From Penicillus capitatus (lineage: Eukaryota; Plantae; Chlorophyta), in the NCBI GenBank assembly GCA_965649825.1, contig OZ287697.1, positions 2,156,351 through 2,220,350 on the forward strand: a DNA stretch of 64,000 bases, given 5' to 3'. Of this stretch, positions 1,608-22,507 are shown piece by piece; positions within the stretch are counted from its first letter, which is position 1, and each line of letters begins with the position of its first letter. Made by a program: the position numbers and the translations under genes. A model generated the notes under the pieces. It was not told the DNA's origin and made no database searches. It saw nothing but the letters and a program-made list of their open reading frames with translations.

Positions 1608-3098
1608 TCATGTACCGTCATCTTCAGAAGATTCTTCCATGTCTTCGCTGCTTGTTTCGCTCTTCTCTTGCGCAGAAGACCTCGGATCTGCAACACAATG
1701 GCGTCTCCTTATCCTTTATGAGTTGTCTAATGACCTGGATTGGTGTCAGAAGCGTCTTGATGGGACGGAAAGATCAAGGGCGCTTTGCCGATGTCTTCCA
1801 GGAAACGGTTCTCGGCCAAGAATCGAATGCACTGCAAGACATAGGACTTATCTCTCCTGATCCATATGATCCAATTCAGAAGATCACACATTGCACGATG
1901 ATCGATCGTACGAACCTGGTATCTCTGTACAGGAGCTTCTCCAGCAGAGACATCGGTTTTCGGGGAATGCCTTGTCGATTAAAGGATCCCTAAAGTAGGG
2001 ATGAATGTATAGATGATGTGTGATCGGGCAAGACGCAACTGGCTCAAGGATTCTTTTGTGCTGAGATGGATCCGTTTCCCATCTCTTGCGCTTTGCATCC
2101 CACCGATGGCGTCGTCCACAGTCCGGTCGATTTCCTCCATAGCGACGATAGAGGCCATCAGTCCCTGCAATGCTGCACGCGACCACACAAAATTGCGTTT
2201 CCTTCTGAAACATATATGGTATGTCCGACGGACCTGGACACGCCCAATTCCTGTTGCTTGGCAAGAATCTCTCGCAGTTCCTTGGCTCTCTCCGAGTTTG
2301 TTTGTTCGTTCTGCACCCACCAAATGAAAACGGCGATCAGAGGCATCACAGATGTCTACCGTGCTGGATGGAAGTTTTGAACGTGGGAAGTTCTTGCGTC
2401 TCTGCTCGATCCATCTGGAACAGACAGAGATCAACAAGATCTCGATCATGCAAGACATGAAGGGGGAGGCACTCTTTCACTTCCTGTCTTTCGGCCTCCG
2501 TCTGGGGTTCGCGCACAGTGACGTGACGCATCTGTTCCATCTCTTGTGCCCGGCGTTCCTGTTCAATCTCCTGTCGAGATCTGTAACGCCGCGACTGCCC
2601 ACGACCTCTTTGAAAATGTCTCCTTCCAGTTCCATGGGCTCTGGACAAACAAAACCCTTCACTTCTGTCATAGAAAACCCAAGAGGTTTACGTTCTGTAA
2701 GAAGGTGTTTCTTGTTTGACAGCCGTCTGCTGAGCAGTAAAGGCGAAGCCCTGCTGAAGGGGGGCATACATGGGAGCCTGTACATTCGGATCGAATCCAG
2801 GCGCCGCCGGCATCGCATAGTTCTGCAGAGGAATTGTCTGAACGGGCTGGAATCCCATGACTCCATAGTTCGGCGCTGTTAGCGGCATTCCGGACAGTCC
2901 TTGGACGCCGGTCCAGATCGCTCCGGTCGGATTCGGCGGAAGCGTCCAGCATGGAGGAAGCCACGCTGCGCTGCTCGTCTGGAGAGGGGCGGCCGACGCT
3001 CCCGATGAGCTCTGTGCGATTCCGGGAATAACCTGCTGGAGACCAGGATGGTAGGGCGGACGGTTCCCTACAGGCGGCGGTGGATCCGACGATGCCAT
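1608..3098 (-). CDS. NUFIP1: NUFIP1/Rsa1-like snoRNP assembly factor (spliced; Pro/Gln-rich N-terminus)
   Basis: Exons encode WIEQRRKNFP (NUFIP1/Rsa1 motif WxxERxKNxP), MSLLEKLLYRD and IRRDKSYVLQCIRFLAENRFL (plant NUFIP C-terminal motif). A final 47-nt intron leads to an acidic tail ending TGA at 1608. Internal boundaries are approximate. Confidence 0.7.
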
Positions 3099-3110
3099 CC
3101 TGTACGACTC

Positions 3111-3471
3111 ATGCAAGAGCGCCTTCTCGGCCGTTTCCTGCTCGTTGCATCGACAGGACTCTTCGCATACTATATCGTCTGGTTGCTGATTACGGTGAAC
3201 AGAACTGCAGATTCTCTCTCGTTACCAAAGCACAAGTGTGCAGCCGTTTGTAGAGGACGGACATTATCTTCTGTCTCTATTCCCCGATCGATTCTACGCT
3301 TTTCGAGTGCCGGTGTTCGTGGGCGTGGTATTTCTGTGCTTTGTGGCTGGAAACGTGGGACTGGTCCTCATCGGTGCGGCATTCAAGGGAGACCGTACAC
3401 CATCCAAGTGTCCCAACATTATCTCACTCTTTTTTAACTCAACGACGGCGTTTTCCAGAAAAGAAAACTAA
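3111..3471 (+). CDS. DPM2: Dolichol-phosphate mannosyltransferase regulatory subunit 2 (about 80 aa, two TM helices)
   Basis: MQERLLGRFLLVASTGLFAYYIVWLLIT, intron 3195-3243, then PFVEDGHYLLSLFPDRFYAFRVPVFVGVVFLCFVAGNVGLVLI. This matches the DPM2 pattern YYxxWxxxxPFV. Stop TAA at 3469-3471. Confidence 0.85.
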
Positions 3472-3477
3472 ACATCC

Positions 3478-5414
3478 ATGGTCGATGCTGCTTCCTATGC
3501 AGGGAACTGGCAGGAACAGATGGATGAGATCATTGCCTTACGTTCGATTTTGGGATCTGATTTCAGGTAACATCTCTCACTCTTTTGCAAGAGTGACATG
3601 AGATGACAGATTGTCGGAATGGGAAGGAGGGCCAAAACTGCAGGAAGACAGCGATTTTACAGAACTCCTCGACTGCAGTGTTCCAGCACAGCCCATCGAC
3701 GTGCACTGTCGAATCACCGTGCGAGTTGAGATGCCCTCAGACGGCATGACGCTCTCTCTCCTCTCGCCCAGCGGCAGTCAATCCAGTACTACAGAAACCG
3801 AAGAGCAGCTCTCTAAGGTCCAGTGTCCGCACGCGACATCTCCTCTGTACGAAGACTCATAGAGCTTAGGTCCTATATGTGCCGCCTCTGTGTCTGACGC
3901 TGGATCTTGTTCCTGGTTATCCATCGGATGCACCGCCCGGATTCCGTCTCTCTGCTTTTTGGCTTTCTCGACAGCAGCTCACGCAGCTGGCCAGGCAGTT
4001 GGATCAGATATGGCAAGAAGCATCTGGTTTTCCTGTGTGCTTCACGTGGATCGACTGGCTGCAGCGATCTCTGCTGTCGACGCTGCATATCGAAACGCAT
4101 TTTCTCATCGATGTGTCACCGCATTCGTGGCAAGAAAACAACGATCCGCGGATAGCGGTGTGTTCGGATGAGATCTCTCCACTGAAGATTATGCAAGACA
4201 TACTCCAACATGACATGATTCGATCGAACGAGGCGTTTCAGAAGAGTGCGTGGTCCTGTCCCGTCTGCATGGAAGAGCAGCCTGGAAAGAATTTTGTCCG
4301 TTTTCACACATGCCGGCATTTCTGCTGCCGCGAGTGTTTCCGGAAGTACTGCTCTGTCAATATCGAGCAAGGACGTGTCGAACTGCGATGCCCTGAGGTC
4401 AAATGCACCACCCCTGTGCCTCCAGAAGTTCTGAAGAAGCACTTGGAGAAGGTGATCTCTCATACAATGCAAGACAGGCAGGATGACGAAGGGTGGCTGG
4501 CACCAGGAAGAGTATGATCGTTGGGAGCAGCTCTTGCTTCAGCGAACGCTCGAAGCGATGTCCGACATCCAATACTGCCCCCGTTGCAGCACGGCATGCA
4601 TCGTGGAGAGCGATCACTTTGCCCAATGTCCAAAGTGCTACTACGCCTTCTGTACGGAATGTCTAGATGCGTGGCATCCCGGCGGGTGCACTCCACTGCT
4701 CAATAGACATCCATCGCATCGTTCTGTGTCACGCAGGGAATGCATTCGGTTGGAAAAGAAGCTGCTAGACGCTGTGGAGAAAGCTGAAGTGGGGGAGACA
4801 CCCAAGCAGGAGCGCCAACGCTATCTGCGGGATCTCAAGAATCAGGTCCTTACCATGCAGTATGTGAAGAAGAACACTCGGGAGTGTCCCAACTGTGGCA
4901 TGGGAATCGAAAAAGACGGAGGATGCAATCACATGTTCTGTACCTATTGCAATATGCATTACTGCTACGTCTGTGGATGCATGAACATCACTTACGATCA
5001 CTTCAGCGCACAAGGATGTGTGCTCTTCGATGAAAGTGTCATTTCTGAATGGGAACGGATGCAAGGGGGTCCACAACAACGACAGGTTTGATCAAAGATC
5101 CGTGCCTTGCTGCTTTGCGATGCGTGAATGCAGGCACAGGCAGAGAGGCGTCCCGAAGAGTGCGTTGTCCTGTATGGAGACCGTGGTTCCTGATGGTGTG
5201 TTGTAGGGGGCCAGACCCATACGACCCAGAGGAACAAGTCTGGGTGTACAAGAGATGCCCAGTTTGCAGCACGTTTCAGCCAAAGACAGATCGGAACAAT
5301 CTCATGCGCTGCTATGTCTGTTCCAATCGATTCTGTTTTCTCTGTCTGGCTGTCTTGCCAAAGAAGAATCCTCAAACACACTTTGGAACAGGACGCTGTC
5401 GCCAACACTCGTAA
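3478..5414 (+). CDS. RWD + RING1-IBR-RING2 (RBR) E3 ubiquitin ligase, RNF14/plant NHL8-like, with an extra C-terminal C6HC-type module
   Basis: Exon 1 QEQMDEIIALRSILGSDF (RWD start); RING1 CPVCMEE...CRHFCCRECF; IBR YCPRC...CPKCYYAFCTECLDAWHPG; RING2 CPNCGMGIEKDGGCNHMFCTYC; last exon CPVC...NNLMRCYVCSNRFCFLC...HFGTGRCRQHS*. Confidence 0.9.
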
Positions 5415-5486
5415 CACAGAACCTAAGGGGTAGAGCGGCTTTGTAGAAGATTCTGTTTCGGAAGTGAAGGGACAGGTCATCTATCG

Positions 5487-5491
5487 TGTAA
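5487..5491 (+). promoter_or_regulatory. Putative chlorophyte polyadenylation signal TGTAA
   Basis: TGTAA lies 72 nt after the RBR-ligase stop. Similar motifs occur at 21560-21564 (after the ankyrin gene) and 34449-34453 (after APC10). UGUAA is the known poly(A) signal of core chlorophytes. Confidence 0.4.
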
Positions 5492-5595
5492 AGGTGTGGA
5501 TGCATACGAGAACAGACGGTATCCATCGGTTTGCCCTTAACGCCACTTGGCAATGGGCCTCGAGGATATACAGAGTTTGTTTCTTCTAACGAGTC

Positions 5596-7821
5596 ATGGC
5601 TGCTCGGATGTGTCCTGTCTCATTTTTCTGTCTCCGATCATGCTGTCGTACAACAAGGGTGACGACGCAGCATGATGACATTGAGGTTGTGTCGGACGGG
5701 CACCGTCGTTCGTCGCCGTGTTGGCGATCTGTACACGCATCTGTTGCCATTCCTATCGTCATCGCCATGCCTCTCGCCTCAGCGACGACGGCATTGGAGC
5801 GATGAGAAGCGAAGGGAGAGAAGCTATGTGGAAGCTACACAAGCCCGGTGGACGCCTCCGCCGTTGGCGGATAACGAGGAAGTCGCACAGGAGACGCTGA
5901 CGTGTCCGGGATGCGGGATCCGGCTGCAGCGAACGCATCCAAACAGACCGGGGTAATTCCAACTGTACTGCAGCACCTAACATGAGATCTTCTCATCTTT
6001 CCTGCACCGTGCGTGCAGCTACTACCGAGTTCCCAAGACAGAAGCATCAGCTCCTGGCTATACCGTACCATACACTCATGGATGCCACCTCAGTTCTTAG
6101 AGCACGCAGCTTTCAGGAGACGGAAAAAGATTACTGGGGAGAAGAGATAGGGCCGAGGGTTGTGTCAGATCGAGTCTCTCCACAGAACGTCGCTATGTCG
6201 GATGTAATGTCCCTTAAGTCATGGCGTCTATCCAAAGCACATTGCTTGAATTCTGAGCAGGAATCGTCTTCGGAGGATGCGATGAGTGATGAATCTCAAG
6301 AGTACACTTTCGAGGAGGAATCGACACAAGAGGCGGCTGTCGTGTGCGAACGCTGCTTCTCTCTACGCCACTATGGGTTCTTCGGCATTCTGCCAGCTGC
6401 GCCGCATCTCAGCCTTCGCTTTCGCTAGGAGGTTGAAGAACATGGAGGCGGAGGCGCTGGTTCCTCAGTTCAGTGTGGAGAGGATTCTGAAGCCCAAGAT
6501 TGCAAAGACTAAAGGAAAGAAGGTGGTTATCGTCTGCGTTGTCGATGTCTTCGATTTCGACAGTTCTTTGCCTGTGGAAGAACTCAAGTGTGTTCAATCA
6601 TCACCTCATCTACCTCGACTGCACGTGCTATTGATGCAGATCCCTGTTCCCAGCATCCGCCAACCTTCCAGATTTTTTAAATTTTATTCTGGTCGGAAGC
6701 AAGGTGGATCTCATATCGAAGAAAATCTCCAAAAAGACGCTCGAGGTGCAATGCTAGAAGGTGTTAAGGTGATCGGCGAACGGATAGTGTTTAGATCTGG
6801 GTCAGGACCCGATTGAAAGAGGCAAAGCTGCCTTTTGCCAAGAGAGTGCATCTCATCAGCAGCCAGACAATGATGGGCGTAGAGAGGCTGATGATCGATC
6901 TGCGAAGAGAGATCGTGCGCAATACAGACTGTTACATTATCGGCATGCAAAATGCAGGAAAGAGCACCATGCTCAATTCGTTGAGGAGACTGGTTCAGAC
7001 AAACAAAGCCAAAAGTACTGCTGGCGGCGCCAGATGGGAGACAGAGTGGCGTTTTCGTAGATCCTGTCACGACAGCATCTCTCCCAGGAACGACGCTAGG
7101 GTTTGTTGACGTACCGGGCATTCCGGTGCCGAAGACCTGTCGAGTGTTTGATACGCCTGGGCTGCCACAGAATGGACAGATCACAGGGCGGTTGACGATG
7201 GAAGAGGTCTGTCACATCGTCGAGATCATCTACAGCTTCCCATCAGCTTCGTGTGTTCAGCTGAAGCTTGTCCAACCGAGAAAGACCGTGAAACCCCGTA
7301 CCTACAGATTTGGAGCACGCAGCAGTCTTCTGATCGGGGGACTAGTACGTCTGGATGTGATCGATCTGCAGGGTCGCACACTGTACATTACTGTCTGGAT
7401 GTCGGAGGAGCTTCTCTGTTTTCTGGGAAAGAGAGAAGAGATCGAGAGCACACTGGAGAAGCATCGGGGGTCATTACTGAGACCTCCAGTGCGCATGAGT
7501 CCACAACTGCAGAGTGCAGGACCACTCGTCCCACAGAGAGTCACTGTCACAGGCGACTCGTGGAAATCCTCCAGCACAGACGTGTGCATTGCAGGTGATC
7601 GCTGTTGCTGTGATGCCGCCCGTTCTGTTGACCTCTCTTGCTTTCTGACAGGATTGGGTTGGTTGTCTGTCGGTTGTGAAGGGGAGGCACAGTTTGATCT
7701 GTGGACACTGAAGGGTGTTCGGGTGACCACTCGGCCTGCATGGGTTAAAGATTACTCTACGGTTTTCCAGAGATCTGGATTCAGTGATACCGTCAAATCC
7801 CGCGGCGTTCGGAAGCGGTGA
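5596..7821 (+). CDS. BPG2: Circularly permuted YqeH/NOA1-family GTPase, plastid BPG2-like (spliced; start uncertain)
   Basis: Zn finger CPGCG...CERC.SLRHYG; VVDVFDFDSSLP; G1 GMQNAGKST; G3 DTPGL; C-terminal domain GGLVRLDV...WKSSSTDVCIAGLGWLSVG. Confidence 0.82.
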
Positions 7822-7869: not shown

Positions 7870-9483
7870 CTAAGTCCACGGATAGAAATTAGGAAAGAGG
7901 AGCGTTCCGAGGAGTGCGTAAGCAAGGAAAACGAAAACCAGAATTCGGCGACGCTGTGAATGCCTGGACAGCTCAGCGGCATACCAGTAGAGTGCAGGAC
8001 AGGAAGATAAGAACCGTGTGATCACCTAGACGATCGCCTCGGATAAAGCATTGCCTGCACAAACGCACCTGAATGTGCATGAACAGGAGGGAAAAGACGC
8101 CCATGAACCCACATTGCCACACAAAGGGTATGGCCGCATACGCATAGAATCCGCGATCTAGGCACAGGACATAGCCACAGAATGCAACAGCCTGTCTGCC
8201 TTGCGTTTTTCGACGGTCAGATTCTGAAGGAACTGCCAGAGGGTGCGCGGCGGATCGTGCAGGATATGGGAGGCCCATCCATGCAAGGACAGGACGAGTA
8301 CAGGCAAGGCCAAGAGGAAATTGGGAAGCTGTCAGCAATGCTCAAAGATACAGAGAGTCCATCGCCTGAGTGCATTTGTCTGACCTGCTTCACTTCACAG
8401 TACTTAAGGAATCCCACACCCCAGTACTCTTTCTGTACAAATCCATAGAGGTACGGAATCGGGTCATTGCACCACGGTCGTGTCAGCAGCACGTCGTCCG
8501 CCGATTTGCAAAACTGAGAGTAGCCCATGTATTGCCAGGCAAGGAAGGGCATCACCGAGCACAGCACGGCCACGCAGCACTTGAAGCATTCCCACATCAT
8601 AGACGTTTGTTTTCTGCAGGCCATCAATCTACGCCATTGGTAATGGCCGAGGTATCCGACGTGGAGTATGCCTGTGCACAAACGAACATTTCTCTTCCGC
8701 TGATCGTTGGGCGAAATCACACCATTGGATCGTATGAGAGTGGAGGTAGCGAAGAAAAGTGTCCCCGTCCAGAGTTGCCTCTTGACATAAAGCGCATACA
8801 GACCCAGCAATGTGAAAAGGGCGAAGCTGCTTTCGGTGTACACCATCGATAAGAAGATGGAACTTGCAGGAATGCAATAGAAGACCGTTGCCATGTCCAC
8901 AAGATACGGATCCTCGACGATCTTGTCTGTCAAACTGTCCGCCGGATAATGACGCGATCTTTCTCGACTGCGGTCTAAACGTACCATGAGAACACATATG
9001 CCGAAGCGACATAGGCAGCATTGTTGAACAGAAGACCGGCCAAAACGAAACGATCTGTGGATATTGGCTCTTGATCACATCCCATCCCTACACAGCGACT
9101 TCAGGGGAAGTGTCGATGAGAGAGATTGGACAAGCGAAAAGGGCGGCGATCCATTGCATGATTTCTGGAATTGCCACATAAGATTTCTCCGTTGATCGGC
9201 GGTGATGGAGCTGACTTGGCAGTAGCGGGAAGAAGGCATGATACTGTTCATACTCATAACCACACTGTGCAATCCGAACAAAGAAGACGGTGTCCCAGAC
9301 GGCTAGGCTGCTCAAGACAGAGGCATCCTCTTCTCGAAGAGTGATGTCACACTCTTTTCGAGGCAATAACGACGTCGAGGTATCGTAATCGTCGAAAACG
9401 TAGTCGAATAGAAGCGTCAAACCAACATTCGCTATCCGAACAGCCGCGGCTAACAATACAACGCGTATCCGGCGACCAAACAT
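7870..9483 (-). CDS. PIGV: GPI mannosyltransferase 2
   Basis: DDYDTS...LAVWDTVFFVRIAQCGYEYEQYHAFFPLLP; PASSIFLSMVYTESSFA; RSNG; YLYGFVQKEYWGVGFLKY; FMHIQVITRFLSSCPALYW...NFYPWT*. An alternative in-frame ATG lies at 9516. Confidence 0.9.
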
Positions 9484-15261: not shown

Positions 15262-15624
15262 AGTTTTGGTCACCGAATTAGCCCGGTGCTGTCTGGCGAG
15301 CTACGTGATCCGTTAGATCGGTGCTGTCTGGCGAAGGTTTTGGTCACCGAATTAGCCCGGTGCTGTCTGGCGAGCTACGTGATCCGTTAGATCGGTGCTG
15401 TCTGGCGAGCTACGTGATCCGTTAGATCGGTGCTGTCTGGCGAGAGTTTTGGTCACCGAATTAGCCGGTGCTGTCTGGCGAGCTACGTGATCCGTTAGAT
15501 CGGTGCTGTCTGGCGAGAGTTTTGGTCACCGAATTAGCCGGTGCTGTCTGGCGAGCTACGTGATCCGTTAGATCGGTGCTGTCTGGCGAGAGTTTTGGTC
15601 GCCGAATTAGCCCGGTGCTGTCTG
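15262..15624. repeat. Composite minisatellite: constant 17-mer alternating with two spacer types
   Basis: CGGTGCTGTCTGGCGAG occurs 10 times (one copy ends in A, the last is partial). It is separated by A = CTACGTGATCCGTTAGAT (5 copies) or B = AGTTTTGGTCACCGAATTAGC(C) (5 copies), in the order B-A-B-A-A-B-A-B-A-B. Confidence 0.95.
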
Positions 15625-21754: not shown

Positions 21755-22507
21755 ATGGCTCAGGTTTCGAGTTTTTTGGGCAAGCCTATTGCCGTGGCTT
21801 TTCCGCAGCCCCATGCAGCTGCGCCACGTCGTATGTTCGTTCGTGCAGAAGCGGATGCCCAATCGACGACGCGTCGAGTCGCTCTTTTGGGCAGCGTCAC
21901 GGCAGCCGGTGCCATTCTTACCCGGGTCGAGTCTTCCTTCGCAGCCTATGGCGAAGCTGCAAAAGTTTTTGGCAAACCAACCGACACATCTGGTTTCATT
22001 CCATTCGTCGGCGAAGGCTTCGCTCTTCTGCTACCGTCAAAATGGAATCCGTCTAAAGAAGCCGAATTTCCCGGAACTGTCCTGCGTTGGGAAGACAATT
22101 CTGACGCCCTTACGCACGTGGTGATTACCAGAACGCCGACAGACAAAACATCGATTGAGCAAGTCGCAACGCCCGAGAAGTTCCTCGAATCCATCAGCTA
22201 CTACATTGGAAAACAAGTATTCAAGGGAGAGACAGCTTCCGAAGGCGGCTTTGCTAAAGATAAGGTCTCCACGGCGAGTCTTCTGGACCAAGATACCGTC
22301 AAGGACAAGAATGGACGTTCCTATTACAAATACAATTTGTTGGTTCGTGCTGCTGATGGCAATGAAGGCGGACGTCATGTGTTGCTGACGGCGACGGTGG
22401 GAAGCGGCAGCATTTTTGTGGCCAAGATTCAGTGTGGAGATAAGAGATGGTTCAAAGGTGCCGATAAACAAGCACTGAAAGTGAGCGATTCGTTTACCGT
22501 TGCTTGA
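21755..22507 (+). CDS. psbP: Photosystem II oxygen-evolving enhancer protein 2 (23 kDa)
   Basis: Bipartite transit peptide with twin Arg (TRRVALLG) and cleavage site SFA|AYGEAAKVFG; FALLLPSKWNPSKEAEFPG; GETASEGGF; RAADGNEGGRH; GDKRWFKG. Confidence 0.96.
   Translation: MAQVSSFLGKPIAVAFPQPHAAAPRRMFVRAEADAQSTTRRVALLGSVTAAGAILTRVESSFAAYGEAAKVFGKPTDTSGFIPFVGEGFALLLPSKWNPSKEAEFPGTVLRWEDNSDALTHVVITRTPTDKTSIEQVATPEKFLESISYYIGKQVFKGETASEGGFAKDKVSTASLLDQDTVKDKNGRSYYKYNLLVRAADGNEGGRHVLLTATVGSGSIFVAKIQCGDKRWFKGADKQALKVSDSFTVA

Follow-up and report, generated by a model that had tools for sequence, protein, structure and literature searches.

Are the gene for the small membrane protein DPM2 and the gene for an RNF14-like E3 ubiquitin ligase, which follow each other at a distance of six nucleotides in the green alga Penicillus capitatus, expressed from a single messenger RNA? 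Here we report the analysis of this gene pair within a stretch of 64,000 nucleotides (the window; NCBI GenBank assembly GCA_965649825.1, contig OZ287697.1, positions 2,156,351 to 2,220,350 of the forward strand). From gene anatomy, purifying selection, gene order, depletion of AUG and start-codon contexts, all of which were observed, we infer that the two open reading frames (ORFs) probably lie on one bicistronic mRNA of the green-algal kind and that the ligase is translated by leaky scanning (rough probability 0.7). This reading is favoured because the ORFs share an exon flanked by introns, their order is conserved, the path between their start codons is free of ATG on one strand, and the first start codon appears to have a weak context.

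The DPM2 ORF begins with an ATG at 3111 on the + strand (ATG1) and ends with a TAA stop at 3469-3471; after the 6-nt spacer ACATCC (3472-3477), the ligase ORF begins in the same frame with the ATG at 3478 (ATG2). This junction, as given in a preliminary description of the locus, was borne out by the sequence and by two independent long-read metagenome contigs of sister genomes, one nearly identical to the window across the locus (L001) and one ~90% identical over the exons (L002). Because the same arrangement is present on both contigs, it is not an assembly quirk. The spacer and the context of ATG2 are unchanged in L001 and L002; the DPM2 stop codon is TAA in the window and TGA in L002. The features of the two genes are as follows.

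3111..3194, + strand: DPM2 exon 1, with ATG1 in the context cgactcATGc and transmembrane (TM) helix 1; 6% diverged from L002.
3195..3243, + strand: DPM2 intron 1, 49 nt (GTGAAC...TGCAG); 18.4% diverged from L002.
3244..3407, + strand: DPM2 exon 2, with the PFVEDG motif and TM helix 2.
3408..3458, + strand: DPM2 intron 2 (newly proposed), 51 nt (GTGTCC...TTCCAG).
3459..3566, + strand: shared exon of 108 nt that comprises the final four codons of DPM2 with the stop, then the spacer, ATG2 and the initial 30 codons of the ligase.
3478..5414, + strand: RNF14-like RWD+RBR E3 ligase gene, 546 amino acids (aa), seven exons; TAA stop at 5412-5414.
3478-3566, 3610-3817, 3870-4451, 4507-4685, 4737-5085, 5134-5159 and 5207-5414, + strand: ligase exons, including a mini-exon of 26 nt (5134-5159).

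Both identities proposed in the preliminary description are supported by Pfam. The spliced DPM2 protein of 86 aa (ORF of 261 nt including the stop) shows two hydrophobic stretches and matched PF07297 over residues 3-72 of 86 with an E-value of 3e-19 and a score of 69.7 bits (cut-off 27.3); this family is the regulatory subunit of dolichol-phosphate-mannose (Dol-P-Man) synthase. The full match was obtained once the exons around intron 1 were joined. L001 carries a 1-nt deletion within this intron, and the ENA gene call on that contig (P0001) reads through intron 1 after the deletion. No entry for the spliced 86-aa protein was found in the protein collection searched.

The second DPM2 intron changes the gene model. 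Its length falls within the 43-55 nt class of the other introns at the locus, it is 19.6% diverged from L002, where it contains a 1-nt insertion, and an intron of matching position and phase is present in the annotated DPM2 gene of [Myrmecia] bisecta (AA|GT, within the Lys codon that follows Ser). Splicing of intron 2 gives an identical DPM2 C-terminus (...RTPSKKEN) with the stop at the same place in the window and in L002; the unspliced L002 frame would continue beyond the ligase ATG. Judged from this comparison, 3408-3458 is an intron, and DPM2 hence has 86 aa. The 103-aa DPM2 with a longer C-terminal tail that had been described earlier was rejected, as the tail is intron 2 sequence; the stop, the 6-nt spacer and the frame relation are unaffected by the revision.

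The downstream protein matched RWD (E-value 2e-19, residues 12-166) followed by IBR, IBR_1 and IBR_2. Its RBR core matches the solved structures of ARIH2, parkin and ARIH1, and it contains the catalytic-type motif GGCNHMFC. The closest homologues are two proteins of Caulerpa lentillifera (42-43% identity over 97-99% of the query), a homologue named 'E3 ubiquitin-protein ligase rnf14' shares 34% identity over 99% of the query, and the orthologues of Micromonas type are named RNF14 by JGI. By its domain order and catalytic cysteine motif, the protein is an RNF14-type RBR E3 ligase.

Comparison with L002 separates exons from introns in both genes. The exons are 6-17% diverged without indels, and the introns, all of 43-55 nt, are 18-36% diverged and carry the indels; the exception is ligase intron 1 (3567-3609), just downstream of ATG2, with a divergence of 7%. 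The 5' splice sites of both genes are degenerate (GTGAAC, GTGTCC, GTAACA, GTCCAG, GTGATC, GTGCAC, GTTTGA, GTGCGT). The DPM2 coding sequence differs from that of L002 by 16 synonymous and 2 non-synonymous codon changes (97.7% amino-acid identity). The ligase frame is open in the window and in L002, and 125 of 204 substitutions fall on third codon positions, with 99 synonymous and 77 non-synonymous codon changes (85.9% amino-acid identity). These substitution patterns indicate that both ORFs are under purifying selection, and they lend indirect support to translation of both.

The anatomy of the junction is the first argument for a common transcript. The shared exon has introns on both sides; DPM2 intron 2 ends with its 3' splice site 19 nt ahead of ATG2, and the 5' splice site that follows belongs to ligase intron 1. 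Six nucleotides are too short for a terminator and a promoter. The next tandem pair in the window, from the ligase stop at 5414 to the ATG of a YqeH/NOA1-like gene at 5672 (+ strand), is separated by 257 nt that include a TGTAA; the genome is compact, yet the 6-nt spacer is far under normal tandem spacing by this measure. An alternative splice that fuses DPM2 to the ligase was also considered and rejected, as the first ligase exon has no AG acceptor in frame with the DPM2 donor.

The same anatomy bears on a different explanation, in which the two genes are separate overlapping units, with the ligase promoter inside DPM2 and the DPM2 polyadenylation site inside the ligase gene (a mixed monocistronic and bicistronic state included), and they have stayed adjacent through shared regulation or by chance. 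The gene-dense genome, where head-to-head start codons lie 12 nt apart, is in favour of this explanation; frequent internal promoters have been reported from another compact green alga (PMC12633428), and incompletely polycistronic loci exist (PMC7896298). With a 3' splice site 19 nt before ATG2, however, the last exon of a separate DPM2 transcript must end within the ligase coding sequence. The explanation also leaves the conserved gene order and the distribution of ATG described below without a cause, and we consider it unlikely.

Gene order provides the second argument. The search for DPM2 beside RNF14-like genes in other chlorophytes that had been suggested for this locus was productive: the pair is kept in four chlorophyte lineages, namely the clade of the window, Chlorophyceae, Trebouxiophyceae and Micromonas. 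The loci compared are listed below with the length of the spacer between the two ORFs.

Sister metagenome genomes L001 and L002: 6 nt, same junction as in the window.
Gonium pectorale: 264 nt; DPM2 ORF unannotated.
[Myrmecia] bisecta: 272 nt; both genes annotated, ligase model without the RWD exons.
Marine Micromonas-type clades A, B, C and D: 17, 2, 42 and 53 nt, respectively; G + C content 58-73%.

A profile scan of metagenome contigs recovered 17 DPM2 loci, and the ligase was the next gene in all 12 marine loci that had at least ~650 nt after the DPM2 stop. The ligase of clade D falls into the same 90% protein cluster as a protein of Micromonas pusilla CCMP1545; the ligase model of Micromonas pusilla, like that of Myrmecia, is without the N-terminal exons. 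Judged from these genomes, the order of DPM2 and then the ligase, both co-oriented, is chlorophyte-wide. DPM2 was absent at the RNF14-like locus of rice, the one land-plant locus checked, and the pairing appears to be confined to chlorophytes. Four short contigs from Logan, JGI and ENA that encode RNF14-like proteins (L006, L007, L027, L028) have no DPM2 upstream and are uninformative on transcripts, and an exact-match scan of JGI metagenome contigs for a 20-mer of the junction gave no match. The retention of the order in four lineages is left unexplained if the genes are separate units.

The third argument is the absence of ATG between the two start codons. Among the 1,245 inter-ATG gaps of the + strand in the window, which average 51 nt, the ATG-free stretch of 367 nt between 3111 and 3478 ranks second in length. 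As CAT occurs 8 times in it, the depletion is specific to one strand. Along the spliced path of 267 nt from ATG1 to ATG2, 5.2 ATGs were expected and none was observed (P = 0.0055). At all five DPM2 dipeptides where an out-of-frame ATG could arise, the codon chosen is the one that avoids it (P = 0.09 by synonymous resampling), and DPM2 has no internal methionine (P = 0.14, multiplied with the P of 0.09 for codon avoidance). The longest inter-ATG gap of the window is a tandem repeat (15263-15624; periods of 35 and 73-74 nt, up to 8.5 copies of the 35-nt period) that is free of ATG on both strands, and the remaining long ATG-free gaps are either tandem repeat or without ORF pairs.

A similar depletion was found in other lineages. 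The spliced path of Myrmecia (542 nt) contains a single ATG, which opens an ORF of 3 codons, against 9.5 expected (P = 0.0008); its two introns have 8 ATGs in 463 nt. In Gonium, the path between the start codons contains 2 ATGs with ORFs of 6 codons and 1 codon (P = 0.02). Separate transcription units would explain neither a strand-specific ATG-free path that spans exactly ATG1 to ATG2 nor the ATG-free spacer of 272 nt in Myrmecia next to introns rich in ATG.

The context of ATG1 completes the picture. In cgactcATGc, positions -3 and +4 are both C, and a pyrimidine is present at -3 in 7 of 8 lineages or clades. Three confident neighbouring genes (PsbP, NOA1-like and RNF123-like) have A at -3, and by comparison with these genes, the context of ATG1 appears weak.

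In the bicistronic mRNA that we favour, transcription would begin just upstream of 3111 and give a very short leader. An upstream ATG is present at 3092, and the transcription start is therefore predicted within 3093-3110, with a leader of at most 18 nt, which would itself favour leaky scanning. The two DPM2 introns and six ligase introns would be removed, and the 3' end of the mRNA would lie past the ligase stop, perhaps formed via the TGTAA at 5487. Scanning 40S subunits would meet AUG1 in a poor context, and those that initiate would produce the 86-aa DPM2 of the endoplasmic reticulum (ER) membrane. The remaining 40S subunits would scan on to AUG2, which has G at +4, and produce the ligase; they could reach AUG2 because the 267 nt of mature RNA contain no other AUG in any frame. 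Termination and reinitiation over the 6-nt spacer may contribute a minor share.

Such an mRNA would resemble those described from other green algae. The hallmarks of green-algal bicistrons are a short ORF1, a short inter-ORF distance and a short 5' untranslated region (5'UTR), a poor Kozak-like sequence for ORF1, and depletion of AUG before ORF2 (PMC11892635, PMC7896298), and published experiments favour leaky scanning over re-initiation or an internal ribosome entry site (Gallaher et al. 2021, PMC7896298; Duenas et al. 2025, PMC11892635). With 261 nt, the DPM2 ORF is short, as are the first ORFs of green-algal bicistrons (medians of 291-357 nt), and its distance of 6 nt to the second ORF compares with a median of 40 nt in Auxenochlorella, where some stop and start codons overlap. 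The apparently weak start context of ORF1, the AUG depletion before ORF2 and the colinearity among chlorophytes are likewise shared, and tiny ER-membrane subunits similar to DPM2 recur as ORF1 of published bicistrons (OST4, DPM3, Kish). The pair described here differs in the intermediate context of ORF2 and in being known from genomic sequence alone.

Another precedent, cited in PMC11892635, is CDC26_TTM3, a deeply conserved bicistron that occurs in land plants as well as green algae. According to that citation, one mRNA carries a small ORF1 there too and, after it, a larger ORF2 of unrelated function; the genes are different, and the bicistron occurs in land plants, where DPM2 and the ligase are not paired at the rice locus.

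A different comparison is offered by the compact genomes of picoeukaryotes (Mamiellophyceae), in which genes overlap and untranslated regions are shared. Tandem genes only a few nucleotides apart are a likeness to this type of compaction, and the Micromonas-type spacers measure 2-53 nt. Simple compaction, however, predicts neither the retention of the pair in the larger genomes of Gonium and Myrmecia, with spacers of 264-272 nt, nor a spacer free of ATG.

Several points weigh against the bicistronic reading. The depletion of ATG is not significant in the GC-rich loci of Micromonas type, where one in-frame internal ATG is kept. ATG2 has no more than an intermediate context, with T at -3 and G at +4, and a purine is present at -3 of ORF2 in 4 of 8 lineages. 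The upstream ATG (3092-3094 in the window and L001, ACG in L002) would, if transcribed, open an out-of-frame ORF of 111 codons that overlaps the ligase start. Overlap is tolerated in this compact genome, where a divergent gene begins 12 nt from ATG1, so that separate transcripts that overlap are conceivable. The pair is not included in the curated bicistron tables of Chlamydomonas and Auxenochlorella that were consulted; the datasets of Gallaher et al. (2021) were outside this comparison, and a prior listing is possible. The supplements of Duenas et al. (2025) contain no entry for DPM2, IBR, RWD or PFVEEG, only a bicistron of DPM3 with thioredoxin/PUB, and the literature searched yielded nothing relevant on DPM2 in bicistronic or polycistronic mRNAs or in Chlamydomonas, or on RNF14 in green algae.

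To these points is added the distribution of the candidate polyadenylation signal:

5487..5491, + strand: TGTAA, candidate polyadenylation signal of the two-ORF transcript; the only TGTAA on the + strand in 3000-6000.

This motif lies 73 nt past the ligase stop and is conserved in L002, within a 3' region of 26% divergence and many indels. It had been stated that no TGTAA occurs before this position, and this is true, but as an argument for one transcript it is weak and was rejected: the number of TGTAA in the window equals the Markov expectation, ~1.6 are expected in the span, and the PsbP gene also has no such motif downstream. The absence of TGTAA is not significant. The PsbP gene (21755-22507, without introns) lacks TGTAA in the 300 nt that follow its stop, and TGTAA may not be a general polyadenylation signal; that the usual motif is not reliably found after genes here is a further point in favour of separate units. 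The proposal of one transcript read by leaky scanning thus keeps its basis in anatomy, synteny, the ATG-free path and the apparently weak context of ATG1 and loses its polyadenylation argument, and a single transcript is still what we infer.

The frame relation of the two ORFs also raises the question whether readthrough of the DPM2 stop, or a reassigned TAA, yields a meaningful membrane-anchored fusion of DPM2 and the ligase. The ORFs are indeed in frame in the window, L001 and L002, where only two sense codons (ACA TCC) intervene. The frame relation is 0, however, in only 3 of 8 lineages, as would be expected by chance, and the spacer of Gonium contains in-frame stops. The DPM2 stop is followed by A in the window (TAA-A) as well as in L002 (TGA-A), and a purine (A) at this place is associated with efficient termination. 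In some ulvophytes, TAA and TAG encode Gln. Here, the code is standard: the TAA/TAG of the ligase lies near the end of the Caulerpa homologues and is followed by divergent sequence rich in indels. A code with TAA/TAG as Gln was rejected, as the ligase terminates at TAA/TAG like its homologues and the DPM2 stop of L002 is TGA. The fusion protein put forward in the preliminary description is hence exceedingly improbable.

Under leaky scanning, any ORF1 reduces the output of ORF2 (PMC11892635), and DPM2 could accordingly be regarded as mainly a long regulatory upstream ORF that throttles translation of the ligase, with its protein being secondary. With six exon junctions downstream of the DPM2 stop, nonsense-mediated decay is possible, as discussed for CDC26_TTM3 (PMC11892635). 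Such a role is nevertheless very unlikely, since the DPM2 protein is far more constrained than the ligase (97.7% vs 85.9% identity with L002), matches PF07297 over its full length, and has no second copy within the window, the only region examined.

The gene upstream of DPM2 is divergent:

3096..3098, - strand: start codon of an RNF123/KPC1-like E3 gene, context caggATGg; 12 nt from the DPM2 ATG.

This gene (2688-3098, continuing to lower coordinates) comprises SPRY, TPR_RNF123, Ufd2P_core and U-box according to the gene lists of L001 and L002. In-frame indels (+3, -6) relative to L002 indicate that the minus strand at 3000-3095 is coding, and the head-to-head gap of 12 nt is identical in L002. 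With such a gap, the space for a promoter is restricted, and both 5'UTRs must be very short or overlap the coding sequence of the other gene. Within 5 kb of DPM2, there is a second gene of the Dol-P-Man/glycosylphosphatidylinositol (GPI) pathway, encoding the GPI mannosyltransferase 2 PIG-V (PF04188, E-value 4e-28; 8217-8987, - strand, with more exons to ~9500). It is present in L001 and L002 and absent at the loci of Gonium and Myrmecia, and its closeness to DPM2 is probably coincidental. No tRNA was found. Database gene calls are unreliable at L001 10001-10360, L003 5422-5736 and L004 6001-10584.

The locus also carries a warning for genome annotation, as DPM2 was missed in Gonium, the N-termini of the ligase are truncated in Myrmecia and Micromonas pusilla, and prokaryote-style calls on metagenomes read through introns.

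The bicistron may have arisen before the split of Mamiellophyceae and core chlorophytes and have been kept to fix, at the level of translation, the output ratio of a regulator of Dol-P-Man/GPI synthesis and a ribosome-associated ligase; we regard this as speculative and rather improbable. If true, the early origin would place the pair among the oldest known nuclear mRNAs for two proteins, and the fixed ratio would imply a functional link between the glycosylation supply of the ER and translation surveillance of the RNF14 type.

If confirmed, this study adds a well-annotated pair to the catalogue of green-algal bicistrons, in which, unlike in most catalogued pairs, both protein families are known. 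The natural series of spacers around the same genes (2, 6, 17, 42, 53, 264 and 272 nt) would be useful to distinguish leaky scanning from termination and reinitiation. Confirmation would also extend bicistrony to Micromonas and to this chlorophyte, whose ligase has its best database matches in Caulerpa.

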